From the sequence record PQ471516.1: a stretch of DNA of 64,000 nucleotides; one strand, written 5' to 3'. The translations under genes were made by a program, and so were the position numbers. Within the stretch, counting starts at the first letter, position 1, and each line of letters starts with the position of its first letter. The notes beneath the pieces are model-generated. The model was not told the DNA's origin, did not search any database, and was given only the letters and a program-made list of their open reading frames with translations. Below are positions 1-64,000 of this stretch, in pieces.

Positions 1-39
1 GGACGGATATTTTTAAAAATTTTTTCAGTACTGAATTTT

Positions 40-86
40 GGGCGTAACTATGCACCCGGTGGGCTTGAGTCTTTCTCGACTTGATG
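40..86 (-). ncRNA. Candidate small RNA, CCC-ANN-GGGUGC family, copy A
   Basis: Minus-strand promoter TTGCTT(119-114)-N16-TATAAT(97-92), then AGUC-GAGAAA-GACU and GCCC-ACC-GGGUGC; no ORF follows. Confidence 0.55.
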
Positions 87-186
87 GAACTATTATACAG
101 TACTGAAAAAATAAAGCAATACCATAAACGCAAAAAGTTTTAATTAATTTGCTTGTTATCCTGGGGCGTATTGTGGTACTATAGTT

Positions 187-240
187 CAGTACTGAGAAAG
201 TGCGTTTACCTGCTAGGGTGCGGGAGTGTATCCTTTTTTT
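187..240 (+). ncRNA. Candidate small RNA, family copy B (variant) with terminator-like end
   Basis: TG-extended TACTAT 177-182; GUACU-GAGAA-AGUGC; GGGUGC-GGGAGU-GUAUCC followed by a T tract. Confidence 0.5.
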
Positions 241-254
241 ATATCTTGAATTTT

Positions 255-301
255 GGGCGTAATTCCGCACCCTCTGGGGTTTCCGCTTTCTCGCGTCTAT
301 G
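255..301 (-). ncRNA. Candidate small RNA, family copy C
   Basis: Minus promoter TTGACT(334-329)-N16-TATAAT(312-307); CGC-GAGAAA-GCG; CCC-AGA-GGGUGC. Confidence 0.55.
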
Positions 302-697
302 TAGTAATTATACGCTTTTTCAGGATCAAGTCAATACCTAAAAACAAAATAATTGAAAATAATTTAACGCGTTTAAACGGCCCGTAAAGCCCTGGAATGA
401 TTGGAATGGTGCAAATGTATAGCTTAGGTGTATTAATGCGTTAGAATGCGTCTGAGGCCGTTTTACGGGGTATAGGGATGATTTGGTGGATTGATTCAGT
501 ACTGAATGATAGTACTACTATATAGAAAGATAGTTCCCCTGGATGGTTGCAGTACTGAATGATAGTTCCCCTATATAGAGAGAAAACTATTTTAAAAGTA
601 CATGTAGAAAGTACTTGCAAACTAAGTTTAACGGCGTATAATGTTTTACATCGAGAGCGGGAACACTTCCCGCTACATATTACGAGAGATTAAAACG

Positions 698-1060
698 ATG
701 GCGACTCAAATCACTAAAATTATTGCTAACCTGGTTAACTTCCGCGACGAGATGAAAGATCTTCCGGCTGAAACGGTAAAAATTCACATCGCAGCTTATC
801 GGGAACTTATTGCAATGTTGCCGCTTAAGCGTGAACAATACGCCGCTACCGTGATGCTTGATGCGATGATCCATAAGATGATCGCCAGTGATTTGACGAT
901 GGTTTATCAGTACATGGGCGAAAAATTCTCGGTGTATAGTAAACCAGTACCAGGAATGGAAAGTACAGAAGTATTACACGGTTTAAATTTAAAACAAGAT
1001 GCATGGGATAATATGCCTCGTTTCCTGGTATGGGCTGACAGTGGCAAAATTTACGAATAA
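698..1060 (+). CDS. Hypothetical early protein
   Basis: ORF track 641..1060; start moved to ATG after promoter, hairpin and RBS. Confidence 0.8.
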   Translation: MATQITKIIANLVNFRDEMKDLPAETVKIHIAAYRELIAMLPLKREQYAATVMLDAMIHKMIASDLTMVYQYMGEKFSVYSKPVPGMESTEVLHGLNLKQDAWDNMPRFLVWADSGKIYE

Positions 1061-1154
1061 GTTTAATAAAGTACTTGCATACTAAGTTAAAACAAGTATA
1101 ATACTTTCTATCAGGTGGGGAATAGTTCCCCACTATAATTAAGAGATTAATTTT

Positions 1155-1388
1155 ATGAGTACTATTTTAACTGTTTCTCAATCCGTTGCACTGACTGACC
1201 TATTAAACGCTTTAAGCCGTTGCACTGAGGTTGGCTTGTTTGATGTGGTTGACGTTGCACCGGACGTTATTAATCATTTTTGTGATGCGATGGAAGAATG
1301 TAAGGAAGATGATAGCCGTATGATGGCGGTCGCCTTTGAGGAAGTACAGCCAGGTGAGATCAAAGGTTTACCAGTACTGAAAAAATAG
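1155..1388 (+). CDS. Hypothetical early protein
   Basis: ORF behind own promoter cassette. Confidence 0.8.
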   Translation: MSTILTVSQSVALTDLLNALSRCTEVGLFDVVDVAPDVINHFCDAMEECKEDDSRMMAVAFEEVQPGEIKGLPVLKK

Positions 1389-1470
1389 TACTTGCAAACT
1401 AAGTTTAAAAGCGTATAATACTTTACATCAGGTGGGGAATAGTTCCCCACTATATAAGAGGATTAAAAAA

Positions 1471-1710
1471 ATGGCTAAATCAAAAATGTTCTTAGGTCAC
1501 AAAAACAAAACTCATTGGAATGTAAGCCTTTGGATTAATAACGATGAGTCATTGTACCGGTTGGCCCAGGACTTTATTAACGATAGCACTAATCGCAATG
1601 ATGCGGCCCGTCATATGATGTTATTTTTAGAACAGACTGGACAAGATAAAACACCGGACGGATTCAAATATAGCACTACTGCGATCCGTGCTGCGATGGT
1701 TGGAATGTAA
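1471..1710 (+). CDS. Hypothetical early protein, paralogue of 3871..4110
   Basis: RBS GAGGA; shares GHKNKTHWNVSLWINN and TPDGFKYSTTAIRAAMVGM. Confidence 0.85.
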   Translation: MAKSKMFLGHKNKTHWNVSLWINNDESLYRLAQDFINDSTNRNDAARHMMLFLEQTGQDKTPDGFKYSTTAIRAAMVGM

Positions 1711-1795
1711 TAGAATTTATTTAAAGTACTATCATTTTTTGCGATAGTACTTTATAATAGTGTTTTATTCATACACCAACGATAAGGGTAACAGC

Positions 1796-2062
1796 ATGAA
1801 TATTAAGTATTTTGCGACGCGTGAACAAGCTCGGATCGCCGCACGCCAGGACGGGGCAACGTTTAAAGATATGGGAGCGGGATCGGCAAGTGGTAAACGT
1901 TGGGCCATTGTAAAGCGTAGTACCGCCAGATCATTACAGTACTGGCTATCTGCTTTAAAGCGTCCTGATAGTGTATCGCGTCGAGTGGTAGAAATAAAGC
2001 ACGACCGCAAGGGCAATCGCGTTACCGTGTACCGTACTAAAAAGATAGCAGTACTTGAATAA
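1796..2062 (+). CDS. Basic hypothetical protein, paralogue of 14694..15098
   Basis: Shares K(Y/F)FATREQARI and HDRKGNRVTVY. Confidence 0.8.
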   Translation: MNIKYFATREQARIAARQDGATFKDMGAGSASGKRWAIVKRSTARSLQYWLSALKRPDSVSRRVVEIKHDRKGNRVTVYRTKKIAVLE

Positions 2063-2149
2063 AAAGTACTTGCAAACTAAGTTTAAAAGCGTATAATGTT
2101 TTACATCGAGAGCGGGAATAGTTCCCGCCTATAACCAGGAGTAATAAAA

Positions 2150-2380
2150 ATGGCTAATATGTATATGACCGAAGTTAAAACCGTAAAAGATACTACCACT
2201 AATAAAACTACTTACTTACAGCGGATCTGTGGTGTATGGCAACGTATCAGCAAATCAAAGTACTTTAAATTAACATCATATGCAAACCGTTCGGATTCAT
2301 TCAGTACTGAAATAAAAGGTAATAAAGTACACCAATACGGCACTTATTATTATTACAGCCTGGACGCGATTGCAGTATAA
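2150..2380 (+). CDS. Hypothetical early protein
   Basis: Promoter cassette, RBS AGGAG. Confidence 0.8.
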   Translation: MANMYMTEVKTVKDTTTNKTTYLQRICGVWQRISKSKYFKLTSYANRSDSFSTEIKGNKVHQYGTYYYYSLDAIAV

Positions 2381-2445
2381 GCAGTTTACAAATCTTTACA
2401 ATTGCCGGTATTGACTTATTTTGTCAGTACTGGCATAATGTATTC

Positions 2446-2490
2446 ATTGGCAGATAAGCCGTAGCCCATAGGGTGCGGGAGTGTATCTAT
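2446..2490 (+). ncRNA. Candidate small RNA, family copy D
   Basis: TTGACT 2411-N17-CATAAT 2434; GGC-AGAUAA-GCC; GCCC-AUA-GGGUGC. Confidence 0.55.
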
Positions 2491-2510
2491 AGAAAAAGTA
2501 GTTTATTACA

Positions 2511-2548
2511 GTTACAATTGTGCACCCGGTGGGTTAGCTGTTGTCATG
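2511..2548 (-). ncRNA. Candidate small RNA, family copy E
   Basis: Minus promoter TTGACA(2583-2578)-N17-CATAAT(2560-2555); ACCC-ACC-GGGUGCACAAUUGUAAC. Confidence 0.55.
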
Positions 2549-2664
2549 GGGTATATTATGCCAGTACTTGATAATGCTGTCAATACTTTTTTTTACTATT
2601 CAGTACAGAAAACTATTTTTAAAAAGTACTTGCAAACTATGTTTAAAGGCGTATAATGTTTTAC

Positions 2665-2739
2665 ATCAGGACGGGGAACGAAATAAGTAACTTCCCGTTA
2701 AGTAGCCCAGGAGTAAGGCACACGAAAAACTCCCCTGAT
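2665..2739 (+). ncRNA. Candidate pseudoknotted RNA motif, copy 1
   Basis: Starts right after promoter 2630-2657; AUCAGG/CCUGAU, ACGGG/CCCGU, pseudoknot GCC/GGC plus GGAG/CUCC. Confidence 0.65.
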
Positions 2740-2806
2740 AAAATAGTTTGACAATTGTTTTTAAAAGCGTATAATACTTACATCGATACTGAATGAGGGT
2801 TACAAA

Positions 2807-3418
2807 ATGAAAACTATCACTACTACTACTTTTGTTATGGCTTTTTCTGAACTGACCGCAGAACAACAAGCGGCGGCTATCGAACTGGTTCGGGAACGTG
2901 AAAAAAACTTAAACGATGATTATTTTTCTGAAAGTGAAATTGAATACTATAAAGAAACAGTACTACCGGAATATGGCATAGATGAAGCTGAATTGCAATT
3001 CAGTGGTTTTTGGTCCCAGGGTGACGGTGCATCAATCAGTACTGACCACGTTGACGCAGTGAAGTTTTTACGCAAGATTAAAGCATTAACTAAGTATCGC
3101 TCGATCCGTCACCTGCTGAATGAAGATGATTTGGCGATGAGTGTAAAGCGTTCTCACTCCCACTACTCGCATGAGAATACTGTAAGCGGGTACATTGAAT
3201 CGGCTTACACTGATTTAACCGCAAAACAAGAAACGTTAGTTAATGAGCTTGAGGAACTACTCACTGAAACTATTCGTGAATTATCCCGCAAGTTGTACCG
3301 TGATTTAGAGAATGCATATGAGGATCAATTCACTACTGAAAACATTACGGCACTGATTGAGGGTAACGAATATCAATTCAATGTCATTGATGGTGTAGTA
3401 GAATCAATCGAATATTAA
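2807..3418 (+). CDS. Acidic hypothetical early protein
   Basis: 203-aa ORF, RBS GAGGG, promoter 2748-2775; FSGFWSQGDGAS segment. Confidence 0.85.
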   Translation: MKTITTTTFVMAFSELTAEQQAAAIELVREREKNLNDDYFSESEIEYYKETVLPEYGIDEAELQFSGFWSQGDGASISTDHVDAVKFLRKIKALTKYRSIRHLLNEDDLAMSVKRSHSHYSHENTVSGYIESAYTDLTAKQETLVNELEELLTETIRELSRKLYRDLENAYEDQFTTENITALIEGNEYQFNVIDGVVESIEY

Positions 3419-3511
3419 TTTAAAAAGTACTTGCAAACTAAGTTTAAAGGCGTATAATACTTTATATCGAGGCGGGGAATGGTTCCCCGCTCACACTAAA
3501 AGGGCAACAAA

Positions 3512-3778
3512 ATGAAAACTTTAAATATCACAACTGCACATCAATTGGTTCGGGATGCGATGGATCATGTGCAAGATTTCTTCCCTGATGTAAGTGTAGT
3601 GACTTATGAAAAAGGTACTTGGACTTATTCAACAATCAACGGTTATGAGCCTGATTTTGATGATCTGGAAGAAATGGAATTTAATTTTGATCTGCTGAAT
3701 GATGCCGCCCGTGAAGTGGAAAACGATGTTCAATACATTGATGGAGTAGTCGCACCTGATGCAGTAAAAGGATTATAA
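3512..3778 (+). CDS. Hypothetical early protein
   Basis: Promoter cassette. Confidence 0.8.
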   Translation: MKTLNITTAHQLVRDAMDHVQDFFPDVSVVTYEKGTWTYSTINGYEPDFDDLEEMEFNFDLLNDAAREVENDVQYIDGVVAPDAVKGL

Positions 3779-3870
3779 AATTTAAAAAGTACTTGCATTG
3801 TAGTTAGATTAACGTATAATACTTTATATCGAGGCGGGGAGTGGTTCCCCGCTCAAACGAGGATTAAAAA

Positions 3871-4110
3871 ATGGCTAGTACTAAAACTTACAACGGACAC
3901 AAAAACAAAACTCATTGGAATGTTTCCTTATGGATTAATAACGGTGAGTCATTGTATCGGCTTGCTCAAAGTTGCATTGCACAAAGTAAAACTAAAGATA
4001 TTGCTGCGGAATGTATGTACCGCAGATTAAAAGCCAACGGTACTACAACCACGCCAGACGGCTTTAAGTATAGCACTACTGCGATCCGTGCTGCGATGGT
4101 TGGAATGTAA
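3871..4110 (+). CDS. Hypothetical early protein, paralogue of 1471..1710
   Basis: Near-identical 3' end at DNA level. Confidence 0.85.
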   Translation: MASTKTYNGHKNKTHWNVSLWINNGESLYRLAQSCIAQSKTKDIAAECMYRRLKANGTTTTPDGFKYSTTAIRAAMVGM

Positions 4111-4168
4111 TATTCAGTACTGAATCAATGGCGGGGAATGGTTCCCGCCTTTATTGAGGGTTTATCTA

Positions 4169-4447
4169 ATGAGTAAAGTAATTAACTATACAGTACTAAG
4201 CAAGTCATTGTCTATAAGTGAGTGCACCAATGGTTTTTGGCTGTACGACGAAACGCGTGGCATGAATTTAGCTATGCAGGAGAAAACTGCTGATGCGGCA
4301 TATCTTAAAGCACTGGAATACTACCAGGAACGTTTGAAGGAAGTAGAAAACAATTATCAAAATTTAAAAGAGAAAGTAGATCATTTCGTCGGTCAATTCG
4401 TTGACGATGACGGGCACTACTGCGACCGTTGCGGATCTTACAGTTAA
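4169..4447 (+). CDS. Hypothetical protein with C-terminal CxxC
   Basis: RBS GAGGG; hairpin 4131-4149 upstream. Confidence 0.75.
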   Translation: MSKVINYTVLSKSLSISECTNGFWLYDETRGMNLAMQEKTADAAYLKALEYYQERLKEVENNYQNLKEKVDHFVGQFVDDDGHYCDRCGSYS

Positions 4448-4464
4448 GTACTGAGGATTATCTA

Positions 4465-4668
4465 ATGAGTGATTTAATTGAACGTATCAAAGAGCTTGAA
4501 GAAAAAGAATTGCAGTTGATCGGCTTACAGAATAAAATCTATCATGATTTGGGGAGTTTTATCAATGCCTGGGATAGTGGCGATCCTGATGCGTTACCTG
4601 CTAACCGCACGGCAATGATCAATGATGTGCGTGGTGTCTTTGATTATGTTTTAAAGCAATTAAATTAA
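4465..4668 (+). CDS. Hypothetical protein
   Basis: RBS GAGGA; start adjusted. Confidence 0.75.
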   Translation: MSDLIERIKELEEKELQLIGLQNKIYHDLGSFINAWDSGDPDALPANRTAMINDVRGVFDYVLKQLN

Positions 4669-4755
4669 AAAAAGTACTTGCAATTAGTTTTTAGTACTGT
4701 ATAATGGTTTACATCAAAGGGAGAAATGGTTCTCCCTGGTAATGAGGAAAATACA

Positions 4756-4977
4756 ATGGCTAATATCACTACTCTTTCCCAACTGGAAGCACTGGTTAAA
4801 TCTATGCGGGAACATGCCGACAAAATCGGCGTACAAGATCCAGCCGTTTGCTTTTGCGACGAATTGAATGATGATACCCTGGTAATAGCAGAAGTCCAGG
4901 ACGTTTCTAACTATTCCTCGCGTTACACTGGCGGCGTAGCAAATAAAGGTGACTTCTGTTTATACCTTACAAAATAA
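4756..4977 (+). CDS. Hypothetical early protein
   Basis: Promoter cassette, RBS GAGGA; start adjusted. Confidence 0.8.
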   Translation: MANITTLSQLEALVKSMREHADKIGVQDPAVCFCDELNDDTLVIAEVQDVSNYSSRYTGGVANKGDFCLYLTK

Positions 4978-4982
4978 CAACG

Positions 4983-5012
4983 CGGGGAGATAATAACTCC
5001 CCGTTACTTTTT
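4983..5012 (+). terminator. Intrinsic terminator
   Basis: CGGGGAG-N7-CTCCCCG plus T-rich tail after stop. Confidence 0.6.
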
Positions 5013-5032
5013 CAGTACTGAATCATTTAATA

Positions 5033-5077
5033 GACGGATCTCGGCACCCGGTGGGTTAGTGACTGTTTCGTCTTGAT
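5033..5077 (-). ncRNA. Candidate small RNA, family copy F
   Basis: Minus promoter TTGACA(5112-5107)-N17-CATAAT(5089-5084); GAC-GAAACA-GUC; ACCC-ACC-GGGUGC. Confidence 0.55.
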
Positions 5078-5220
5078 GTAGTAATTATGCCAGTACTGGA
5101 TGCACTTGTCAACAATTATTTTTCAAATACTTTTTATTAAAATACTTGCAATTAGTTTTTAAACGCGTATAATGTTTTGCATAGGGGGAGCGGTTCCCCT
5201 GGTAACTAAGGAATAAGAAA

Positions 5221-5457
5221 ATGGTCGAACAAATCAAATCAACGTCTTCGAATGTAACGGGAACGGTAGCACACTTTACTAGTGATGAATCGCGGGGCGT
5301 TCCCTATTGTGCTGTACATGTAAACACTGAGGGTAACTACTGGTTTACGGTTTACGGATCATATTCATTTGGACGGCCAGGGCATCAAAAAATTCTGGAT
5401 AAAGTACAGCCAACGGGTAAAAATATCACTGCTGAAATGTTTTATAAAAAATCATAA
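5221..5457 (+). CDS. Hypothetical early protein
   Basis: Promoter cassette, RBS AAGGA. Confidence 0.8.
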   Translation: MVEQIKSTSSNVTGTVAHFTSDESRGVPYCAVHVNTEGNYWFTVYGSYSFGRPGHQKILDKVQPTGKNITAEMFYKKS

Positions 5458-5542
5458 AGTACTTGCAATTAGTTTTCAGTACTGTATAATCTTTTACATC
5501 GACACGGGAAAACGGTTTCCCCTGGTAACTAAGGATAATCAA

Positions 5543-5842
5543 ATGAAAGTTGCAATCATCGCCCTGGCTTTATCTGTATCGTCTTTCGCTGTTAACGCTT
5601 CCGTTGATGTACCGCGTGAAAAATTCATTCAGTGCACTGTTGCAATGACTAACGAGGAAACGGCTGAGATCGTTACCAAATCCCTGGAACTGGCCCCTGC
5701 GATGTTTGCCAATGGCCCGTATCATGAAGAAGATGATCAGGGTAGCACGACCATCTATTACGATGCAAAAAGTAAACGCGGTTCAGTTACTGTAATGGAT
5801 ACTGAGAAAGTTACATTCACGGGAGTAATTAATTGTTTTTAA
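5543..5842 (+). CDS. Exported protein with signal peptide
   Basis: MKVAIIALALSVSSFAVNA fits a Sec signal peptide; RBS AAGGA; start adjusted from 5369. Confidence 0.7.
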   Translation: MKVAIIALALSVSSFAVNASVDVPREKFIQCTVAMTNEETAEIVTKSLELAPAMFANGPYHEEDDQGSTTIYYDAKSKRGSVTVMDTEKVTFTGVINCF

Positions 5843-5858
5843 TGAAGTACTGAATCAT

Positions 5859-5887
5859 AAGCCCACTATAAGAAGTGGGCTTTTTTT
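5859..5887 (+). terminator. Intrinsic terminator
   Basis: AAGCCCACT-N6-AGTGGGCTT plus T tract. Confidence 0.8.
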
Positions 5888-5964
5888 ATTGTAGTACTGA
5901 ATACTTTAAAAATAGTTTTGAAATAGTAGTTGACATTACCAGGGAAAGGCGTAGAATGTATTAC

Positions 5965-6027
5965 ATCAGGACGGGGAACACTAAGTAGACCGCCAGTAAG
6001 TCGAACGAAAAACTGGACACGACCTGG
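5965..6027 (+). ncRNA. Candidate pseudoknotted RNA motif, copy 2 (divergent)
   Basis: After promoter 5930-5957; UAAGUA GAC CG CCAG UAA GUC GAACGAAAAA CUGG. Confidence 0.6.
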
Positions 6028-6072
6028 AAACTTTGATAAACTAAATTACACTTTAATTGAGGAATTAAAAAA

Positions 6073-6552
6073 ATGGCAAATGTAAAATCATTCTTTAAAG
6101 CACTGGTATCTTCTGACGTATCTATCGCCGCTGAATTGCTGGCTGACCTGGATAATGATACCATGAAAGCAGTACGCAATAATTTTAATATGGCGTACAG
6201 TGCAGCAAAAGAACTGCAAGCCAAAAAGGTAGCAGAACTGGAAGCGGCAAAGGCAGAACGTGAAGCAGAACTGCAAGCAACAATCGAAAGCATCCAGGCG
6301 GCGGTAAGTGGATTGGATATCGAGATCGTAACCGATATGGCACATAAAGCCCTAGCTGCAAAATACGGTGAAGTAAAAGCGGTTAAAGAAAAGAAATGGA
6401 TTCAGGACCGCGTTAACGTAGTACTAGACAACGGGGAAGAATATCTTATTCCTGTACGCGGTAACTGCATTGCCGTAGTACTGGACGCGATTAACTCCAG
6501 TGGTATGACACGCGAGGAATGGATCGAAGCTCATCGCAAAGTTGAAGCATAA
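6073..6552 (+). CDS. H-NS-like protein (coiled coil plus H-NS-type C-terminal domain)
   Basis: Ala/Glu coiled coil; C-terminal NGEEYLIPVRGNCIAVVLDAINSSGMTREEWI aligns without gaps to E. coli H-NS [32 protein letters not shown] (from memory). Confidence 0.55.
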   Translation: MANVKSFFKALVSSDVSIAAELLADLDNDTMKAVRNNFNMAYSAAKELQAKKVAELEAAKAEREAELQATIESIQAAVSGLDIEIVTDMAHKALAAKYGEVKAVKEKKWIQDRVNVVLDNGEEYLIPVRGNCIAVVLDAINSSGMTREEWIEAHRKVEA

Positions 6553-6573
6553 CAATAAAAGTACTGAATCACT

Positions 6574-6600
6574 AGCCCACCTTAAACGGTGGGCTTTTTT
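6574..6600 (+). terminator. Intrinsic terminator
   Basis: AGCCCACC-N6-GGTGGGCT plus T tract. Confidence 0.8.
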
Positions 6601-6837
6601 GTGTTTATCGTTTACCAGGCCACCAGCACCGCCTAGAAACGATTCTAACGCATTAAACTGATTATCCGATGCATTGCCCTAGCTGGTGGCGTTAAGGCTG
6701 TAAGAACGCGATTGAGAGCGTTTAAAGTATTTTGCAAAAAGTAATAAAAAGTACTTGCACGATTAAGAGATTAGCGTATAATGTTTTACATCGAGAGGGG
6801 GAAACGGTTCTCCTTCCAAATCAAAGGAATCAAAACA

Positions 6838-7065
6838 ATGGCTATTATCATTACTCGCGTATCTGGTACTACTGGCAACGAACAAGTAGTTGCAGTCATT
6901 ACCAACAAGGAAGGTGCGGAATTGCAAAATGCAATGAATACCTGGGCCGTTAATGAGTTCGGTCAGTGGGCAAGTGTAGCATACATTGAAACCTATCAAG
7001 TGCCGTCGATTAGTTTAACTGATTTGGGCGTTGAGCGTATCCTTTGCCTTGATGAATTAAATTAA
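6838..7065 (+). CDS. Hypothetical early protein
   Basis: Promoter cassette; start adjusted. Confidence 0.8.
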   Translation: MAIIITRVSGTTGNEQVVAVITNKEGAELQNAMNTWAVNEFGQWASVAYIETYQVPSISLTDLGVERILCLDELN

Positions 7066-7151
7066 AAAAGTACTTGCAAAGTAAATCGAATAAAGTATAA
7101 TACATTACATCAAGGGGAGAAAATGGTTCTCCCCACTACAAGGAAACTAAA

Positions 7152-7295
7152 ATGAAAACTTGTCAATGTGGTCAGAAATCTATTACGGGTTTAAAGCGGG
7201 GCGTTGCTCTTTGCCAGTACCATTATAATTTACAAGTATGGGGTAAAGAATGGGCCGACCAGGTGGAAGCAATCAAGAAAGCAAAAAGTAAGTAA
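7152..7295 (+). CDS. Small Cys/His protein (47 aa)
   Basis: Own cassette, RBS AAGGA; CQCG...CQYH; below ORF-track cutoff. Confidence 0.7.
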   Translation: MKTCQCGQKSITGLKRGVALCQYHYNLQVWGKEWADQVEAIKKAKSK

Positions 7296-7374
7296 AAATA
7301 TTATCACAGTGCTATTGACATAGTTTGATAGTACTGGCATAATAGATTTTATCAAGACAACTGAGGAAAATAAA

Positions 7375-7587
7375 ATGGCTATCATTACTAAAATCAAAGT
7401 AAACAAATCACTGGTTAAGCTGGAAGAAGTGAAAGCAGGTTATAAAGTATCGTGGTGCGGTATGTATCGGATGTTCGCAGATATTGATGAAGCGATCAAT
7501 TATTACAGCGACACGGTTAAAAACTTTGTTCGTGCTGATGTGGTTATGGCAGTGGTAACGCACAAAGCAGCGAAAGAAAGTAAGTAA
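7375..7587 (+). CDS. Hypothetical early protein
   Basis: Promoter, RBS GAGGA. Confidence 0.8.
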   Translation: MAIITKIKVNKSLVKLEEVKAGYKVSWCGMYRMFADIDEAINYYSDTVKNFVRADVVMAVVTHKAAKESK

Positions 7588-7676
7588 AAATATTATCACA
7601 GTACTATTGACATAGTTTGATAGTACTGGCATAATAGATTTTATCAAGACAACATATTAATTTAAGGAATACAAAA

Positions 7677-8000
7677 ATGGCTAAAACTATCATTAACACC
7701 GTTTCCCTGGCTGCAATCCGTGCAATCAATGTTGACGGTAAACGTTGGACTGATTCATATGGCAATACTTATCATTCTTGTCATGTAAGCGTTGAACTGG
7801 ATAACGGTTTGAATGATCTGGCGGTTGAATCATTTACTTATGGCTATGAAGATGCATATCAACAAACGGCGTTAGATCTCTTAAAGGAATCAGTAGACGG
7901 GCTTAATACTGATGAAACCTCCCTTACTCGTTTGTGCAATGATCTTAATATCCCGTTGCATTGTACTGTACAGAATGTTAAACGCAAAAAAGATCTTTAA
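7677..8000 (+). CDS. Hypothetical protein, paralogue of 14280..14603
   Basis: Shares RWTDS(Y/H)GNTYHSC and FTYGY. Confidence 0.85.
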   Translation: MAKTIINTVSLAAIRAINVDGKRWTDSYGNTYHSCHVSVELDNGLNDLAVESFTYGYEDAYQQTALDLLKESVDGLNTDETSLTRLCNDLNIPLHCTVQNVKRKKDL

Positions 8001-8080
8001 TTAGCTTTACTTTATGCAGATACTTTGATATAGTGTCTGCATAGGGGAAAGAAATTAAATTAACTTAAGAGGATCGTATA

Positions 8081-8350
8081 ATGAAAAATATCAGTACTTT
8101 AATCGATGCAGGTACACATGTTCGGCGGTCAATGGTTGCAACCAGTACTACAAAACAAGTAGCGAGCGGTTATCTTGTATTTGTGCACGATGGTAAACTC
8201 CTGGAACGTTCAATCAATTTTGATGTTAAAAACAATTGCCGTTTTATTATCTTTAAGCGTGAGCAATATAAAATTGATTTACCAGCAAAGCCCATTAGTG
8301 GGGCGTACAACGTGCAATCATTGTTTGAACGTCAACCATACACCTATTAA
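8081..8350 (+). CDS. Hypothetical protein
   Basis: RBS GAGGA. Confidence 0.7.
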   Translation: MKNISTLIDAGTHVRRSMVATSTTKQVASGYLVFVHDGKLLERSINFDVKNNCRFIIFKREQYKIDLPAKPISGAYNVQSLFERQPYTY

Positions 8351-8401
8351 TCAAAACATCGTTAGCGGTCGATTTAGGCCGCTTATATTGGGGATTATAC
8401 C

Positions 8402-8674
8402 ATGAACGTTAATCAAGTACTGAATGAGATCGAAAGCATCATTAAACCGATGAAGCGTACTGATGCTATGTTAACACCGGAAGAATGCCGCCTTTATGAG
8501 CGTTACAGCGTCGAACAAGTCCAGGCGATGGCTATGGCTACCCCAGCCGTTAAACCGCCTGAGAATGCGTTACAGGACGTTACAGGGGATTATATCATCA
8601 ATCCAGTACTAGGGAAGATGGCTGCAATCACCGAAGATCAACAAGACTACTTAAGCCAGTACTTAAAAGGTTAA
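8402..8674 (+). CDS. Hypothetical protein
   Basis: ORF track, operon context. Confidence 0.7.
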   Translation: MNVNQVLNEIESIIKPMKRTDAMLTPEECRLYERYSVEQVQAMAMATPAVKPPENALQDVTGDYIINPVLGKMAAITEDQQDYLSQYLKG

Positions 8675-8679
8675 TTAAT

Positions 8680-8889
8680 ATGCTTACTGTACAGGATAAG
8701 ATCGACATCTTAAAGGTTAATATGTATGTGATTGATGCAGTACCTGGTAAAGTATTTGCATACGATGACACCACTGTAAGCGATTTCTACTATAGCCAGG
8801 ACGTGGGGGATCTTTCTGTACAGTCGGTTATTGAAAACGTAGTTAATGCAGCGTATGAGCATTTACTTTCAAATAGTACTTGCAATTAG
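8680..8889 (+). CDS. Hypothetical protein
   Basis: ORF track, follows previous gene. Confidence 0.7.
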   Translation: MLTVQDKIDILKVNMYVIDAVPGKVFAYDDTTVSDFYYSQDVGDLSVQSVIENVVNAAYEHLLSNSTCN

Positions 8890-9185
8890 TTTTTAAACGC
8901 GTATAATGTTTTACATGAAGGGGAGAAATGATTCTCCCCACTAATTAAGGAATATGAAATGAAAGCATCAAAAAAGAGTAATACTAAGAAAGCACGTTCA
9001 CCTTTCGCTGGGGTATTCCCTTTACGTTTCGTTGATGAAGTAGTTTCCTACCCGCCGGGCCTTACTCCTGAGATGGTAGAAAGTTTGCGTAAATCTAAAA
9101 AATAGTACTTGCAATTAGTTTTTAAACGCGTATAATGTTTTACATGAAGGGGAGAAATGGTTCTCCCAATAACAGGAGAATCAAA

Positions 9186-9338
9186 ATGAAACAATACAAC
9201 GCTCGGTTTGATGTTACTATCGGTAACGGCAAAGGTCAATTCTCTTTCAGTACTCGCAAAAGTTATACAGAAAACTTCCTGCGTAATTGTGCACTGACCG
9301 CCGCACAAATTAAACATTATTTTCAGGCTAAAAAATGA
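9186..9338 (+). CDS. Small hypothetical protein
   Basis: Promoter cassette, RBS AGGAG; start adjusted. Confidence 0.7.
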   Translation: MKQYNARFDVTIGNGKGQFSFSTRKSYTENFLRNCALTAAQIKHYFQAKK

Positions 9339-9573
9339 AAACATTAGCTTACTATAGTTCGGCCCTGGTCGGTGCATTGATCGCGGCGTTGTTAGTAACC
9401 TATCTATTCTTTATGGTGATTTAAATGAATCCAACAGGTTTAAACTATAAAAGTTGTTCGGCGTTTACGAAAGCAAATAAAGCGAATGCACGTAAAGCGA
9501 AAGTACAGGAATACATCAAGCAAGGCATGACGCGAAAGGCGGCGATTCTAAAAGCTAAAAATAAATGAAAAAA

Positions 9574-9606
9574 GTGGTTGACTCCGGTCAGCCATTTTGC
9601 TATTAT
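9574..9606 (+). promoter_or_regulatory. Palindromic terminator-like element overlapping the promoter of sRNA copy G (also 13315-13349, 16619-16654, 18881-18916)
   Basis: NGG(A/T)TTGAC-TC(C/A)G-GTCAG..CCN then TTT(T)GC-TATTAT; TTGACT-N17-TATTAT with TG extension. Confidence 0.7.
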
Positions 9607-9611
9607 ATATT

Positions 9612-9660
9612 CATTGAGAGATAGCTCACTAGCCCACAGGGTGCATAAGTGTATCTATTA
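9612..9660 (+). ncRNA. Candidate small RNA, family copy G
   Basis: UGAG-AGAUAG-CUCA; GCCC-ACA-GGGUGCAUAAGUGUAUCU; no ORF. Confidence 0.6.
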
Positions 9661-53951: not shown

Positions 53952-53969
53952 AAATTAGTGATATAATCT

Positions 53970-54002: not shown

Positions 54003-54570
54003 AATCCTGAAAGGTTCCATAAGGAAATGATTAAGACCTAATCCACTCGAAAAGTAGAGGGTAGTTGAGTAGTCCTTTCAGTACGAACAGCAAAAGAAAC
54101 CCGTCAGATGTGGGCATAGTTTGAACCCCTCACGGCAATGCGGCTGTATAAAGAACTCCGATAAGCACACAGAGAGTTCCTAGATAGACATATAAGGATC
54201 GCACCTTACGAGATTTGCTAAGGGAGATTTCACTTTGAAATGCGGTCGTAATTTATACAATATAGTTGCGTCCAAAATTTGTGAAATCAAATACAAGTAC
54301 TGTTCATATGGTATTTGTATTATGTGTCGGGATGTTTAAGACCGACGACCGTTGCTACAAGAACCGCAATAGAGAGAAACAGAGCAACCCGCTTTCGCCC
54401 CAGTACTGGGAATTTGTGATATGAATATGTGAAGACCATCAGCGTCAAACTTTTTGTTCTTTCCCCTGCGGGGGGATGAAATATGTTCAAACAAATCCCG
54501 TCAATATTAATTAAACTACTAATAAAGTTGAATTAGACATGCGAAGCGTGTATAATTCAACCGATTTTTA
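53974..54570 (+). ncRNA. Candidate large structured non-coding RNA
   Basis: About 600 nt with no ORF of 60 aa or more, several local helices, bounded by a promoter and a 3' hairpin; strand inferred. Confidence 0.4.
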
Positions 54571-54625
54571 TTGAGTGCTAACGAGATAAAAGTCGTGTAC
54601 ATCCATTGATGTTTCCATAGGAATA

Positions 54626-55168
54626 ATGATGTCTACAAGAAAATCAAGTGTAAGTATTGTGTATAAGTCAAGTAATTTTTTGGATTGTAATGAACCTCAA
54701 GACTTTGAGAGTTTTAGTGGTTTTCAAATTATCAGAGAACGAGGTAAGCTCTCTTATATCAGAGAACTACAAGACGGAATTGAGATTACATCTATTAAAT
54801 TCAGACCTACACAAATACCCACAATCCTCAAAGCACAATATGGTAATTACTTCGAAGAGAGATACAACGGGAACACTATCAGTTCTAAGTGTCACTTAAT
54901 CAACGGAGATTTAGAAGGAGAGTACAGAAAGTATAGCCCCGATGGAACGTGCATTGGCGTTAAATATTACTGTTCAGGAGTCGATGTAACCCAGGAAATC
55001 ATTGACTTTTTGAAATTAAATTGCACAGTACTGACAATACATGAGTATAAGTTCACGGAAGAAGAAGAGTTTGTACTTATGGTCAGATACGGTTCACATT
55101 TTAAGTTTTACTATGAATATAACATTGACAGTAGTACTTTTGATAATATAGTACTTAACTGTCTATAA
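54626..55168 (+). CDS. Hypothetical protein (beta-repeat-like, FQ-like C-terminus)
   Basis: GDLEGEYRKYSPDG resembles a MORN-like turn; EEEEFVLMVRY. Confidence 0.75.
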   Translation: MMSTRKSSVSIVYKSSNFLDCNEPQDFESFSGFQIIRERGKLSYIRELQDGIEITSIKFRPTQIPTILKAQYGNYFEERYNGNTISSKCHLINGDLEGEYRKYSPDGTCIGVKYYCSGVDVTQEIIDFLKLNCTVLTIHEYKFTEEEEFVLMVRYGSHFKFYYEYNIDSSTFDNIVLNCL

Positions 55169-55184: not shown

Positions 55185-55712
55185 ATGAGTGAAAAGGATT
55201 CTACTCAAACAAATAAACATTCAGTACACTTCAGTACTGGAAAGGATAACTGGACTACACCAAAGCAATTATTTGAAGATTTGGATGAAGTCTGGGAATT
55301 TACATTAGATGCTGCTTGTGTTAAAGAAACAGCACTATGTGAGAAGTACTTCACACCAGAAGATGATTCACTTTCACAGGATTGGGGTAAGAATATTTGC
55401 TGGCTCAACCCGCCCTATAGTGATTTGAAAACTTGGTTATCTAAGGCGGTTGATGCATACAATAAAGGTGCAACAGTAATGATACTAGTACCTTCAAGGA
55501 CTGATACTATTGCATTTCAACAGTACGCAGCTAAGGTATGTGATTGTGTATGTTTCATTAAAGGTAGATTGCGTTTTGGTATTCCTGAAGAACCTGAAAA
55601 GAAAACTGATTCAGCCCCCTTCCCTAGCTGCTTGATAGTACTGGATAAGTACTTAACTCCCGCTAAACTAAATTATCTTAAATCTCTTGGATTGGTGATG
55701 AAGAACGTATGA
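55185..55712 (+). CDS. dam: Phage DNA N6-adenine methyltransferase (Dam-type)
   Basis: WTTP, FTLDAAC, CWLNPPYS, LVPSRTDT, FIKGRLRFG, APFPS motifs. Confidence 0.92.
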   Translation: MSEKDSTQTNKHSVHFSTGKDNWTTPKQLFEDLDEVWEFTLDAACVKETALCEKYFTPEDDSLSQDWGKNICWLNPPYSDLKTWLSKAVDAYNKGATVMILVPSRTDTIAFQQYAAKVCDCVCFIKGRLRFGIPEEPEKKTDSAPFPSCLIVLDKYLTPAKLNYLKSLGLVMKNV

Positions 55713-61511: not shown

Positions 61512-61774
61512 TGGATATACAATCTCAATTACAATTGTTAACAGTGCTTGAAGATTCTGCGTTTCAGGTTGTATCAGATATAATCAAATCACTCCCACCT
61601 GGAACTAAAGTACGTGTTAGAGAGAAGAGTTATGATACTTTCGAAATAGTTGAACAGGAATTAACTGTAAAAAAAGTAACTTATTATGACTCATCATTAT
61701 GTATTCAGTGTGAGGATAAAGACGAGATGTTATTGTATTATAATCAACACACAGATATAGAGGTAATATCATGA
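61511..61774 (+). CDS. Hypothetical protein
   Basis: Coupled; start adjusted. Confidence 0.75.
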   Translation: MDIQSQLQLLTVLEDSAFQVVSDIIKSLPPGTKVRVREKSYDTFEIVEQELTVKKVTYYDSSLCIQCEDKDEMLLYYNQHTDIEVIS

Positions 61775-62913
61775 CACATTTACAAATATACGAAGACTTA
61801 ATGCACTTGTGCAAAACAAATGAAGCATTTTATTATGTTGATCATAAAAGTCCGGCTGGTGGTACATACCGTGTATTCTCATATCGTCTGGCTTCTTATA
61901 CTGATTTCAGTCTTCCCAATGCACTGGAAACACGTGGTTCTATGTGGGAAATTGATGAAGATGGTGAAATGATTCGTTGTGCAGCAAGAACAATGGAAAA
62001 GTTCTTCAATGCTTACGAGAACCCATTCACTATGTTCAGTTCAGATACGACTTGTGAAGATATTTCGGTAGCGATGCCTAAACTTGACGGTTCAATCATC
62101 AGTACATTTCGTGATAACGATGGTGAAATCCGTTGTAAATCACACACTTCCTTGTCATCTGACCATGCAATTAACAGTACTCGACTATTGAACGAGAACC
62201 GTAATTTGTATGATTATGTAGACGAAGCAGACCGTTTGGGTTATACTGTGAATCTGGAGTATACAAGTCCAGAGTACCGAATAGTATTACCATATCAAGT
62301 AGAACAATTATTTGTACTCAATGTTCGTCATCGTAAAAGTGGTGAGTTGTTATGCGGAGCAGCACTACGTAAGAAGTTCCCTTGTTTAGCACAATACAGT
62401 ACTAATATGACGGGTAATAACATATGTTCATCATTTCCGGTGCGTTCTACCTTCAAAGAAAGTGTAGAAGAAGTCCGTAAAATGGTTGACATTGAGGGGT
62501 TTGTGTGCATCCTAAATAATGGTACAATGTGTAAAATTAAAACGGATTGGTATTGCTCCTTGCATTTAACAAAGGATAGTATTATCATAGATTCCCATTT
62601 ATATGAAGCTGTATTAAATGGTAGTAGTGATGACCTAAAGCAGTTGTTCAGTACTGATGCATATGCTATGCAGAAGATATTAAAAATGGAACAACATGTA
62701 TTTGGATGCTATAATGCTTTACAAGATGAGGTAGAAAGCTTCGTCCAACAATACAAGCACTTGGAGCGAAAGGAATTCGCAATGAAGGTTCAGGAATGTC
62801 TTAAGAATGAACTGAACCGTCAGGGCTTGGCCTTTGCGTTGTACAACGGTAAAGTGGTGAATTATAAAGAAACTTTATTGAAGTACTACAAAGATGTACT
62901 AAAGGATTTTTAG
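61771..62913 (+). CDS. rnlA: T4 Rnl1-type RNA ligase
   Basis: RVFSYRL, ETRG, KFFN, PKLDGS (motif I), NLEY, NRIV-like YRIV, EGFV, KIKTDWY. Confidence 0.93.
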   Translation: MTHLQIYEDLMHLCKTNEAFYYVDHKSPAGGTYRVFSYRLASYTDFSLPNALETRGSMWEIDEDGEMIRCAARTMEKFFNAYENPFTMFSSDTTCEDISVAMPKLDGSIISTFRDNDGEIRCKSHTSLSSDHAINSTRLLNENRNLYDYVDEADRLGYTVNLEYTSPEYRIVLPYQVEQLFVLNVRHRKSGELLCGAALRKKFPCLAQYSTNMTGNNICSSFPVRSTFKESVEEVRKMVDIEGFVCILNNGTMCKIKTDWYCSLHLTKDSIIIDSHLYEAVLNGSSDDLKQLFSTDAYAMQKILKMEQHVFGCYNALQDEVESFVQQYKHLERKEFAMKVQECLKNELNRQGLAFALYNGKVVNYKETLLKYYKDVLKDF

Positions 62914-62942
62914 TACTAACTAGCCTAGCACAAGGAGAAGTG

Positions 62943-63197
62943 ATGGCTAAACCTAAGTATAAAAATGACGGTTCCCTTTCTCCGACCGAGTTCAGGAAAA
63001 TACAACAAGATATCGATGAATTACAGCACAAACGCTCAAAGAAAGGTGTGAAGATTAGTAAGAAAAGAATCGAGAATACTTTTGGGTGTAGTAGTACTGA
63101 ATACAAGAAGAAGAGGAAACCAAAAGACGTGCAACCGAGAATACATGATGTGTCTCGACATACGTCTAAGCGTGAAAACAAATTCGATCCACTATAA
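62943..63197 (+). CDS. Basic hypothetical protein
   Basis: RBS AAGGAG; Lys/Arg rich. Confidence 0.75.
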   Translation: MAKPKYKNDGSLSPTEFRKIQQDIDELQHKRSKKGVKISKKRIENTFGCSSTEYKKKRKPKDVQPRIHDVSRHTSKRENKFDPL

Positions 63198-63206
63198 GGA
63201 GTTCAT

Positions 63207-63437
63207 ATGAAAGTTGAAGTTCAGCATAGTATTGTACAAGATATGTCCGTTGTGAAATTTCTATCATTGAAAGATTATTTCAGATGCATCAAGTTCCTAG
63301 AAGAATCGCAACTACAGTGGACACCGTTGAAGTACAGTTCATCCAATGATACAGCCAGTATTCGTTGTGATGAATCTGTACTTGTGAAAATCTCTAAGAG
63401 ATTTGGGGTAGGTAAAGTTAATGAGCACAGTAAGTGA
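63207..63437 (+). CDS. Hypothetical protein
   Basis: RBS AAGGAG. Confidence 0.8.
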   Translation: MKVEVQHSIVQDMSVVKFLSLKDYFRCIKFLEESQLQWTPLKYSSSNDTASIRCDESVLVKISKRFGVGKVNEHSK

Positions 63438-63675
63438 TCTAAAATACTACAACAAAACTGCGGAAACGTTTATTAATCATTTATATGATGAATTTAGTCG
63501 TATCCGCAAGGAATATACTGGTAAATGTATTTTATATTGTTCTTATCATAGTGGTGGAATTGAACGTGCTTACATTACTAAAGTAAAGTTTTCTGATGAC
63601 TATCAATTACTCTTTGAATTAGATAATTGTTTCGTTATTGAAGCTAGTTTGATAATGGATGTACTGGATAATTGA
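63421..63675 (+). CDS. Hypothetical protein
   Basis: Coupled. Confidence 0.75.
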   Translation: MSTVSDLKYYNKTAETFINHLYDEFSRIRKEYTGKCILYCSYHSGGIERAYITKVKFSDDYQLLFELDNCFVIEASLIMDVLDN

Positions 63676-63681
63676 GGACAT

Positions 63682-63996
63682 ATGAATAAAGAACTTGCAC
63701 ATGAAGGTATCGAAAAGTTAAAGTACATTGAAAAGGAACTAATAGAATCCATTGAATCAATGGTCGAAGATTACGTTTTCGATTTTAAGAAAACATTGAT
63801 TGGATGTAAAGTTAAATGCTGGGATCATACTATCAGAGAATGGTTCAGTACTATTATTCTTGATGTTAAAGTATCTCGTACTGCTATTGGTAACTTAGTA
63901 AATGGTGAATGTTTTGTATACACTGAATACAATAACGGAACACGACACCTTTCAAAAGGATGGCACAGACTCGAAGATGTAGAATTCATCGAGTAA
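63682..63996 (+). CDS. Hypothetical protein
   Basis: RBS GAGGA. Confidence 0.8.
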   Translation: MNKELAHEGIEKLKYIEKELIESIESMVEDYVFDFKKTLIGCKVKCWDHTIREWFSTIILDVKVSRTAIGNLVNGECFVYTEYNNGTRHLSKGWHRLEDVEFIE

Positions 63997-64000
63997 TAAG

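Follow-up and report, generated by a model that had tools for sequence, protein, structure and literature searches.

The genome of Escherichia phage Turkey5, a giant 351-kb relative of 121Q, PBECO4 and RaK2, carries the palindrome AGTACT about ten times more often than expected by chance, an excess that codon use does not account for, while it lacks GCGC entirely. The same pair of features was found in an unrelated family of enterobacterial prophages, which points to a sequence-encoded mark, not described before, that may be read by a two-fold-symmetric DNA-binding protein. The window analyzed here comprises bases 1-64000 of the Turkey5 genome and contains no N. As shown, AGTACT occurs 275 times in the window against 20.29±4.44 in dinucleotide-preserving shuffles (shuffle maximum of 32), and 989 times against 118 expected over 350 kb (8.4x). 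The original prediction, that AGTACT is strongly over-represented against some 20-25 expected occurrences, is therefore confirmed, including its estimate of the expected number. AGTACT is the top hexamer by z-score (z=55) and the only strongly over-represented 6-bp palindrome in the window (12.9x), the next being GTGCAC at 3.2x.

Results

The word extends outward from the central hexamer, with C at -1 in 43% of the sites, G at +1 in 47%, T at -3/-4 and A at +8/+9, so that the full 14-bp word is TTnCAGTACTGnAA. Genome-wide, CAGTACTG occurs 208 times against 3.9 expected, a 53-fold enrichment, and TTCAGTACTGAA occurs 14 times against 0.04. These dyad-symmetric flanks were observed in reading frames 0, 1 and 2 and also between genes, although every gene in the window is on one strand. 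The main features are as follows:

1-64000 (strand not specified): array of 275 AGTACT sites, of which 188 are in coding DNA, 82 are intergenic and 5 are on gene boundaries; it continues through the remaining 286 kb of the genome.
1-20303 (+ strand): densest zone, formed by small early genes, each with its own sigma-70-type promoter, with 11.7 sites/kb between genes and 3.7 sites/kb in coding DNA.
4673-4705 (+ strand): example of an early promoter with both placements, AGTACT-TGCAA (-35 edge) and AGTACT-G-TATAAT (abutting the -10), with centres 20 bp apart; the same two-site form occurs at 5458-5490 and 12812-12844.
13925-13952 (+ strand): example of a TTGACA-N16-TATAAT promoter (12/12 match) with AGTACT at 13940, in the spacer next to the -10.
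4116-4149 (+ strand): example of AGTACTGAA placed 9 nt before a terminator hairpin; the same layout occurs at 5846, 6560 and 15108.
20309-23216 (strand not specified): hole of 2.9 kb without any site, where 17.9 are expected at the local density (P=2e-8) and about 1 from base composition.
23217-23243 (strand not specified): three sites in 27 bp just upstream of ORF 23273-23641, which holds five more sites, including an abutting pair.
26035-30926 (strand not specified): hole of 4.9 kb without any site, where 19.1 are expected at the local density (P=5e-9); GCGC is absent here too.
55185-55712 (+ strand): PF05869 Dam-family N6-adenine methyltransferase (E=2.7e-33) with an NPPY motif, syntenic with GAP32_068 and CBB_72, given as context and not as a demonstrated part of the system.

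The densest zone probably corresponds to the ~21-kb direct terminal repeat of relatives, since window positions 2060-12511 align to positions 4154-12423 of phage fEgEco12, inside its 20,993-bp terminal repeat (PMC13070987). The other dense zone of the genome is at 345-350 kb.

The coding sites are read as AGT-ACT (84), xxA-GTA-CTx (61) and xAG-TAC-Txx (43), which correspond to the Ser-Thr, Val-Leu and (K/Q/E)-Tyr readings, as predicted. It had been set beforehand that the idea of a mark would fail if the enrichment disappeared after correction for codon and amino acid usage, and this was not the case. With every protein sequence and the codon usage of each gene held fixed, 60.9±7.0 sites are expected and 188 are seen (z=18), whereas shuffling of codon order gives 26.3±4.6 (z=35). 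In 16 large late and replication genes on both strands, 127 sites were found against 40.7±5.4 (z=16), and 56% of the Ser-Thr dipeptides are encoded by AGT-ACT against 16% expected. The sites are scattered at random (gap CV of 0.90-1.06) and the deciles along genes are flat, which supports selection for density and not for position.

The original prediction also placed the word at most promoters, next to terminators and in tandem runs, and each of these placements was observed. Of 36 intergenic TATAAT boxes in 1-20.4 kb, 22 have the word starting 27 nt upstream (AGTACTTGCA, sharing its last T with a TTGCAA -35 hexamer) and 12 have it 7 nt upstream (AGTACTGTATAAT). By coordinates, 31 of 38 + strand promoter-like sites scoring at least 10/12 carry the word, nine of the ten 12/12 promoters have a site inside them, and the same layout occurs in GAP32 and CBB. 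These fixed positions could, however, reflect the duplication of promoter cassettes, with sites filling unconstrained positions, rather than operator function. The word is not confined to promoters, given the 188 sites inside genes. Sites lie 7-21 nt before, or just after, the hairpins at 215, 4130, 4982, 5859, 6574 and 15123. Regarding tandem runs, besides the three sites in 27 bp, AGTACTAGTACT sits at 23297-23308 and further clusters are at 23495-23524 and 24431-24466.

Sites are kept between species more often than other hexamers: 35 of 52 are kept in the comparison with Turkey3, against 44% of all hexamers (P=6e-4), and 11 of 27 in that with RaK2, against 20% (P=0.01). Nevertheless, per-site conservation is only moderately above background and is not significant in the comparison with PBECO4 (P=0.12). 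Recently acquired DNA lacks the sites, as both holes lie in a lineage-specific block, the first of them in a block present only in Turkey5 and JNE01. The trait is shared by related phages, with 119 sites in RaK2, 253 in GAP32 and 266 in CBB in the first 50 kb of each, against ~17 expected, and 64 against 10 in 30 kb of XbC2 (170-200 kb of its genome). GCGC is 0 in all of them, and in Turkey5 it is at 0 of 383 expected.

A second lineage, a ~33-kb Leclercia prophage family that shares only a lysozyme with Turkey5, shows the same features. The Leclercia prophage has 136 sites (13x), 54 copies of CAGTACTG, the same flank logo and no GCGC, and the signature ends exactly at the prophage borders, while an ISL3 insertion inside it has 0 AGTACT and 6 GCGC. 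The link between GCGC absence and AGTACT excess rests on two independent lineages; a Fisher test over 100 loci is inflated by relatedness, and the IMG/VR scan was seeded with CAGTACTG pairs, which biases it toward that flank. Among the control phages, PA5oct has 1 AGTACT against 8.9 expected and 28 GCGC against 31, so it shows neither feature, and rV5, T5 and the DCP80 record, filed under a T4-type genus, show no AGTACT excess and are likewise counted as lacking both features.

A Pfam scan of 144 window proteins gave no DNA-binding family, and homology searches between the two lineages yielded no shared candidate for a protein that reads the word, the lysozyme being the only gene in common.

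Discussion

Our findings suggest that AGTACT is the core of a dyad-symmetric word kept by selection at high density across the whole phage genome, and that it is most likely read on double-stranded DNA by a dimeric, sequence-specific protein. We give this reading a probability of roughly 0.4. What the analysis shows directly is that the word is placed wherever the sequence tolerates it, three times denser between genes than within them, uniform along genes, and frequent enough in coding DNA to shift both codon choice and dipeptide content; that it is kept between species more often than other hexamers; that it is missing from newly acquired DNA; and that in the enriched genomes it always comes with a complete lack of GCGC. 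Binding by a protein and the use of the word by the phage are inferred, and methylation of the word is only hypothetical. In this view, the array would act as a positive identity mark for phage DNA, since it runs at 2.8-4.3 sites/kb against about 0.06/kb in a 50-kb sample of E. coli K-12, a roughly 50-fold difference, although depletion in the host is not robust (13 against 15.9 when the Leclercia flanks are pooled with E. coli). GCGC, absent from the phage and at about 6.8/kb in the host, would be the converse mark, and together they would let some activity (protection, a nuclease, or transcription), which the present data do not link to any one process, tell unmodified phage DNA from host DNA. 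In the early region, a dimer bound against the -35 or the -10 hexamer would cover the contacts of sigma, so the same protein would also control early transcription, most simply by shutting it off. The reader could be a small phage protein too diverged to be detected by sequence or, because two unrelated phage lineages use the same word, a host protein of Enterobacterales.

A bolder form of this hypothesis is that some unmodified phages of Enterobacterales write "self" into their sequence with two words, a dense array of TTnCAGTACTGnAA bound by a dimeric protein and a strict ban on GCGC, which is abundant in the host and could be the target of a nuclease. Giant lytic myoviruses and ~33-kb temperate siphovirus-like prophages share the exact words but no detectable gene apart from the lysozyme, therefore the reader may be a conserved host protein that these phages exploit or a tiny mobile phage protein. 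Although unlikely on present evidence, this would be a new way for a virus to separate its DNA from that of the cell without base modification.

The interpretation originally proposed, a genome-wide self mark or a binding site for a phage nucleoid, packaging or methylation protein, with the Dam-type enzyme at 55185 as one candidate, is partly supported. The general idea fits the symmetric flanks, the random placement within genes, the purifying selection, the absence from acquired DNA and the contrast in density with the host, but the specific candidate is not supported as the cause. An epigenetic mark, in which AGTACT would be the target of this enzyme, remains possible but doubtful. Selection would then act on the density of methylated sites; methylation next to the -35 and -10 hexamers could, for instance, separate injected, fully methylated DNA from newly replicated DNA, or it could block an Eco255I/ScaI-type host enzyme. 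In support of it, a PF05869 NPPY enzyme is present and syntenic across the clade (Turkey5, GAP32 and CBB), the Leclercia prophage encodes an NPPF amino-methyltransferase, RaK2 DNA is reported to be methylated (PMC3622015), and an AGTACT-cutting enzyme (Eco255I) exists in E. coli, so 989 unprotected sites would be a liability. However, protection by methylation removes selection against a site but does not explain a 10-50-fold excess. The Leclercia family, where the extended word is equally enriched, has no PF05869 gene; the two lineages have unrelated methyltransferases, and the gamma-class enzyme of the prophage, the only amino-methyltransferase found there, is missing from family members that keep the signature (loci L112, L121 and L083). 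A dyad-symmetric preference over 14 bp would fit a dimeric binder better than a methyltransferase acting as a monomer. In addition, virion DNA of fEgEco12 is cut exactly as predicted by EcoRI, HindIII, NsiI and others, a set that did not include ScaI, so there is no broad adenine methylation (PMC13070987).

It is less likely that the word serves DNA transactions, as a preferred site for packaging, recombination, nicking or a topoisomerase, comparable to uptake sequences or Chi. The genome-wide density, the intergenic excess and the absence from foreign DNA match the pattern of uptake sequences, density is highest in the probable terminal repeat, and cutting A|GTAC|T on both strands would leave a 4-nt 5' overhang, the geometry of a type II topoisomerase. 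On the other hand, the two lineages have unrelated terminases (T4 gp17-like and lambda GpA-like), unrelated replication genes and different lifestyles, a palindrome cannot carry orientation in the way Chi does, and the published gyrase consensus reportedly has a GRYC overhang, not GTAC.

A by-product without function of its own, arising from codon or dipeptide usage, from the purge of other palindromes, from the spread of promoter cassettes or from a very-short-patch-type repair bias, is improbable. AGT, ACT, GTA and TAC are indeed common codons, early promoters are near-identical copies and 25 of the 64 6-bp palindromes are purged from the genome. Nevertheless, the excess survives both kinds of codon shuffle and is present in all frames, on both strands and in late genes far from any promoter; no one-off neighbour is depleted (AGTATT/AATACT is at 1.13x), sites are conserved above background, the same extended word arose in an unrelated lineage, and other AT-rich coliphages lack it.

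A signal at the RNA level, for processing, stability or translation through AGUACU, is very unlikely: many sites do lie in 5' leaders and just before terminators, but the flanks are symmetric although all genes in the window are on one strand, sites are equally enriched in minus-strand genes, CAGUACUG cannot fold on itself and promoter-embedded sites are not transcribed. Recruitment of the host nucleoid protein SlmA, which would be activated by the phage genome to block host cell division, is refuted by its published specificity: its site GTGAGTACTCAC has AGTACT as the central six bases (PMC3020112), and two unrelated phage lineages of Enterobacterales share the word while a Pseudomonas relative lacks it, but SlmA needs G1, T2, A4 and G5 and a purine at position 3, where the phage word has C in 43% of sites and G least (12%), with no preference for G1 or T2, GTRAGYRCTYAC occurs 0 times in 350 kb and GAGTACTC is used less than its flanks predict.

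Among systems already described, the DNA uptake sequences of Neisseria and Haemophilus (DUS/USS) are short words at roughly one or more copies per kb of the whole genome, in tolerated frames of coding DNA and denser between genes and around terminators, conserved among relatives, missing from foreign DNA and serving to tell own DNA from other DNA, as proposed here. Those words, however, are bacterial, are not palindromes and are read by a competence pilin during uptake, whereas the word of Turkey5 is in a phage, is dyad-symmetric and has no uptake step. GATC, with Dam, SeqA and MutH in E. coli, is also a palindrome, at about one site per 250-350 bp, scattered at random, that can sit in promoters and change their activity with methylation state, and the phage does encode a Dam-family enzyme. 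Yet GATC is a 4-mer near its chance frequency, while AGTACT needs a 10-fold excess to reach that density, and no methyltransferase is shared by the two lineages. SlmA sites and other palindromic nucleoid marks (Noc sites, parS, matS) are 12-16-bp palindromes read by a dimer at many chromosomal sites, but those systems use tens of sites, not about a thousand, and the flanks that SlmA requires are absent or avoided here. T4 discriminates its own from host DNA, so that nucleases and transcription factors treat them differently, by a modified base (hydroxymethylcytosine, Alc, endonucleases II and IV); the job proposed here is the same, but the DNA appears unmodified in bulk (PMC13070987) and the difference would be written in sequence words. 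The restriction-site avoidance of phages is extreme in this genome for GCGC and for 25 six-base palindromes, while AGTACT goes the opposite way in spite of Eco255I. The LexA box (CTGT-N8-ACAG) occurs 5 times against 3.9 expected, and CAGTACTG holds two half-sites pointing away from each other. Finally, Chi (GCTGGTGG) is an over-represented word that changes how RecBCD treats the DNA that carries it, but it is asymmetric and depends on orientation, unlike AGTACT; Chi itself is also enriched in the window, with 9 copies on the + strand between 6.6 and 19 kb.

Frequency and extent of the AGTACT word

The original prediction that AGTACT is strongly over-represented throughout the sequence was confirmed. 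The word occurs 275 times in the window, against 20.3±4.4 in dinucleotide-preserving shuffles, and it is the highest-scoring hexamer and the only strongly over-represented six-base palindrome. An order-4 Markov model showed no excess, but only because the overlapping 5-mers already carry the signal, so that this model is not informative. The window, which contains no N, comprises bases 1-64000 of Escherichia phage Turkey5 (PQ471516.1, 351,311 bp), a jumbo myovirus related to 121Q, PBECO4 and slurp01, and all of its 159 annotated genes are on the + strand, almost all of them as 'hypothetical'. In order to test the finding genome-wide, the first 350 kb of the record were analyzed, where AGTACT occurs 989 times against 118 expected from composition.

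The word is longer than six bases. As observed over the 350 kb, C precedes it in 43% of sites and G follows in 47%, while T is favoured at -3/-4 and A at +8/+9. CAGTACTG occurs 208 times vs 3.9 expected (53x), and TTCAGTACTGAA occurs 14 times vs 0.04. These flank preferences are mirror images and are seen in each of the three reading frames and between genes, although every gene in the window runs the same way. That symmetry is what recognition of duplex DNA by a two-fold-symmetric protein would produce, and not what an RNA signal or a coding bias would produce.

Codon and amino acid usage

The original prediction had named the loss of the enrichment after correction for codon and amino acid usage as the result that would refute it, and this was not observed. 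When synonymous codons were shuffled within each gene, with proteins and codon usage unchanged, 60.9±7.0 sites were obtained against 188 observed (z=18), and shuffling of codon order gave 26.3±4.6 (z=35), with all three frames enriched. The higher baseline when proteins are kept fixed shows that the protein sequences themselves are enriched for compatible dipeptides. Of all Ser-Thr dipeptides, 56% are written AGT-ACT, against 16% expected from already inflated codon frequencies. Sixteen large structural and replication genes elsewhere in the genome, seven of them on the minus strand, hold 127 sites against 40.7±5.4 in the same kind of test (z=16). Therefore, codon and amino acid usage was rejected as the cause. 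An exception among these genes is the major capsid gene (Turkey5 201660-202835), which has no AGTACT at all and lies in one of the longest site-free gaps outside the window (201373-203692); this may reflect strong codon constraint in a very highly expressed gene. A very-short-patch-type repair bias was also rejected, since no one-off neighbour of the word is depleted.

Distribution of the sites

Within the window, the density of sites is 3.4/kb in coding DNA and 8.8/kb between genes, rising to 11.7/kb between the small early genes of 1-20.3 kb. Genome-wide there are 2-3 sites/kb everywhere, with peaks of 6-7/kb at 1-20 kb and 345-350 kb. By alignment to fEgEco12, the first ~20 kb corresponds to the 20,993-bp direct terminal repeat of that phage (PMC13070987). 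Gaps between sites are close to exponential (CV 0.90-1.06), with no regular or helically phased spacing and only a weak excess at 16-30 bp that comes from promoter pairs. Sites are spread evenly along genes, and no preference for gene ends was found. Selection therefore acts on density rather than on exact position. Individual sites are still kept more often than other hexamers: 35 of 52 are kept against Turkey3, vs 44% for all hexamers (P=6e-4), and 11 of 27 against RaK2, vs 20% (P=0.01), whereas against PBECO4 the figure is 23 of 51 vs 36%, which is not significant. The sites also form local clusters, as had been predicted.

Promoters and terminators

The early region is packed with near-consensus sigma-70-type promoters, ten of them perfect 12/12 matches. 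Of 36 intergenic TATAAT boxes, 22 have AGTACT starting 27 nt upstream, where its last T is the first base of a TTGCAA -35 hexamer, and 12 have it 7 nt upstream, as AGTACTGTATAAT; several promoters have both, with centres 20 bp apart. By coordinates, 31 of 38 strong + strand promoter-like sites carry the word, as had been predicted for most promoters. The same two placements were found in GAP32 and CBB, which belong to another genus and which in megablast searches matched Turkey5 only in conserved core genes and one intergenic block. A dimer covering 14 bp at either place would overlap the contacts of sigma, and for this reason we infer a role of the word in the control of early promoters. Nevertheless, it cannot be excluded that sites simply fill free positions beside constrained hexamers and were then copied along with promoter cassettes. 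No link to T4-type late promoters (TATAAATA) was found. In agreement with the prediction that the word flanks terminators, sites also lie 7-21 nt before several terminator hairpins or just after them.

Other elements were noticed in the early region (coordinates of the window):

1-20000, 5' leaders of most early genes: nearly every early promoter is followed by a GGGGAAnnGTTCCCC-type hairpin before the ribosome-binding site, which resembles the promoter-early stem-loop cassettes described in T4-type phages.
9571-9598, 13314-13341, 16619-16646 and 18881-18908: four copies of an intergenic element with a 12-bp-stem hairpin (AAAGGGATTGACTCnGGTCAGTCCCTTT), each followed by a conserved ~70-nt stretch and then an AGTACT pair and a promoter.
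15164-15418 and 15472-15690: an ORF with a ParE-like toxin domain (E=3e-10), followed by a 72-residue ORF annotated as a transcriptional regulator.
15415-15443 and 15691-15719: two promoter-like sites, upstream of the 72-residue ORF and of the next ORF (15749-15991), each carrying two AGTACT 16 bp apart.
20208-20394: a 93-nt unit duplicated in tandem, each copy with one AGTACT, situated where site density drops and where the ~21-kb terminal repeat of relatives would end.

Recently acquired DNA and the absence of GCGC

Recently acquired DNA lacks the word, and two stretches of the window contain no site:

20309-23216: 18 sites expected at the local density.
26035-30926: 19 sites expected at the local density.

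For each stretch P is about 1e-8, and 1-2 sites would be expected from composition. Both lie in a block found only in Turkey5 and one close relative, JNE01. The excess therefore builds up over time in resident DNA.

A companion feature of the genome is that GCGC is absent from all 350 kb, where 383 copies are expected. Of the 64 six-base palindromes, 25 are absent too, each with 13-39 copies expected, and so are non-palindromic words such as GAGACC. Many of these palindromes are sites of restriction enzymes of enteric bacteria, and a phage- or host-encoded GCGC-cutting activity is a possible cause of the GCGC absence. The two stretches without AGTACT also lack GCGC. The GCGC ban therefore applies at once to incoming DNA, whereas the AGTACT excess accumulates slowly.

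Occurrence in other phages and prophages

AGTACT is the top or near-top hexamer, and GCGC is zero, in RaK2 (Klebsiella), GAP32 (Cronobacter), CBB (Pectobacterium), XbC2, Turkey3 and PBECO4. A scan of IMG/VR for two CAGTACTG within 30 nt returned 115 loci. Among the 100 loci of at least 3 kb, all 34 with a genuine genome-wide excess of AGTACT had GCGC = 0; the two apparent exceptions, with AGTACT excess but normal GCGC, are tandem coding repeats and not genome-wide enrichment.

Besides jumbo-phage contigs, most of these loci (about 25) belong to a second, unrelated family of ~25-35-kb elements, which have lambda-type head genes (GpA terminase, portal_2, protease-capsid fusion), a J-like tail tip and a large serine recombinase, and which are integrated in Leclercia chromosomes. 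The copy in Leclercia sp. CP046445.1 (about 1.81-1.84 Mb) is 33.9 kb at 42% G+C, in a host at about 55%. It has 136 AGTACT (13x), 54 CAGTACTG and the same flank logo (C at -1 62%, G at +1 61%, T at -3/-4, A at +8/+9), and the same palindromes are absent. It has no GCGC except six inside an inserted ISL3 element, and that element has no AGTACT, so that the insertion breaks both rules. The signature stops at the prophage borders, and family members as diverged as 27-47% amino acid identity keep it.

Four controls lack the AGTACT excess. PA5oct, a Pseudomonas relative of the jumbo clade, has AGTACT 1 vs 8.9 and GCGC 28 vs 31, and no excess was found in rV5, T5 and the record of Escherichia phage DCP80, which is filed under a T4-type genus. 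DCP80 (PQ671644.1, 1-50000) was considered as a cultured relative of the second lineage and rejected, since it lacks the signature; the record seems to join a siphovirus-like structural block to T4-like genes, with rIIA present twice in opposite orientation, and from this mixed gene content we suspect a chimeric assembly. A 50-kb sample of E. coli K-12 has 3 AGTACT and 342 GCGC. When the Leclercia flanks are pooled in, the host is not clearly depleted of AGTACT, and we therefore claim only a large density contrast and not host avoidance.

Candidate reader proteins and meaning of the word

The original prediction proposed a genome-wide self mark or a binding site for a phage protein, with the Dam-type enzyme at 55185 as one candidate, and this interpretation is only partly supported, since the evidence favours a mark on phage DNA but not this enzyme as its cause. 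The ORF at 55185 (+ strand) is a PF05869 Dam-family enzyme with an NPPY motif and is conserved in synteny in GAP32 and CBB. However, the Leclercia prophage has no such gene. It has a gamma-class NPPF methyltransferase, but that gene is missing from other family members that span the same region and keep the signature. In searches for a reader or writer protein common to the two lineages by tblastn, phmmer and family profiles, only a T4-type lysozyme was found to be shared. A Pfam scan of 144 window proteins gave six families of unknown or unrelated function and no DNA-binding family, and Pfam scans of candidates near site clusters gave nothing that binds DNA. The early genes conserved across the prophage family include a 51-residue protein that, from its N-terminal strand-then-helix sequence pattern, may be a ribbon-helix-helix protein, a fold that reads short palindromes such as the 8-bp met box; this is only a lead, based on inspection of the sequence. 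On present evidence, the putative reader may be either a host protein common to Enterobacterales or a small phage protein that evolves too fast to detect. SlmA, whose site shares the central hexamer, is excluded by its published requirements, and LexA boxes are at chance level.

The finding is real, strong and ancient within the clade. As far as the searchable literature shows it is also undescribed, since no mention of the word was found in the RaK2, CBB or fEgEco12 papers or in full-text searches, and a full-text search for CAGTACTG returned only primer sequences. The best-supported reading is a density-selected, dyad-symmetric DNA word that marks phage DNA, is paired with a ban on GCGC and also sits on early promoters. 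The analysis supports well that this is a selected duplex-DNA word, whereas its binding by a dimeric protein is inferred from the symmetry, and what the mark is used for is conjecture.

Phage genomes are known for losing palindromes and not for gaining them. The genome of Turkey5 has purged 25 of the 64 six-base palindromes, yet it keeps one at about a thousand copies, strongly enough to bend codon choice and protein sequence, which implies a strong selective force that has not been named. Since the same word, paired with the same GCGC ban, appears in an unrelated prophage family but not in a Pseudomonas relative, and its excess is not seen in other coliphages, the question is open to comparative and bench work. 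If the word is an identity mark, it would show how large phages with ordinary DNA tell themselves from the host, and it would also give handles for controlling early transcription, for engineering these phages and for recognising them in metagenomes.

Additional features of the window

Two further features were observed:

6682, 10957, 11466, 12416, 13402, 15787, 17195, 18773 and 18996: nine Chi sequences (GCTGGTGG), all on the + strand, within 12.4 kb of the early/terminal-repeat region.
53952-54628: an unannotated ~680-nt intergenic region conserved across genera.

For Chi, about 1.5 per strand are expected for the whole genome, and this accumulation could protect the entering DNA end against RecBCD. 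The mean column identity of the region at 53952-54628 with GAP32 35091-35804 and CBB 32301-32989 is 78%, with blocks of 25-40 invariant bases, and it also matches Serratia, Erwinia, Yersinia and Xanthomonas phages. Rfam searches gave no hits in the window and none in this region, which may be a structured non-coding RNA.
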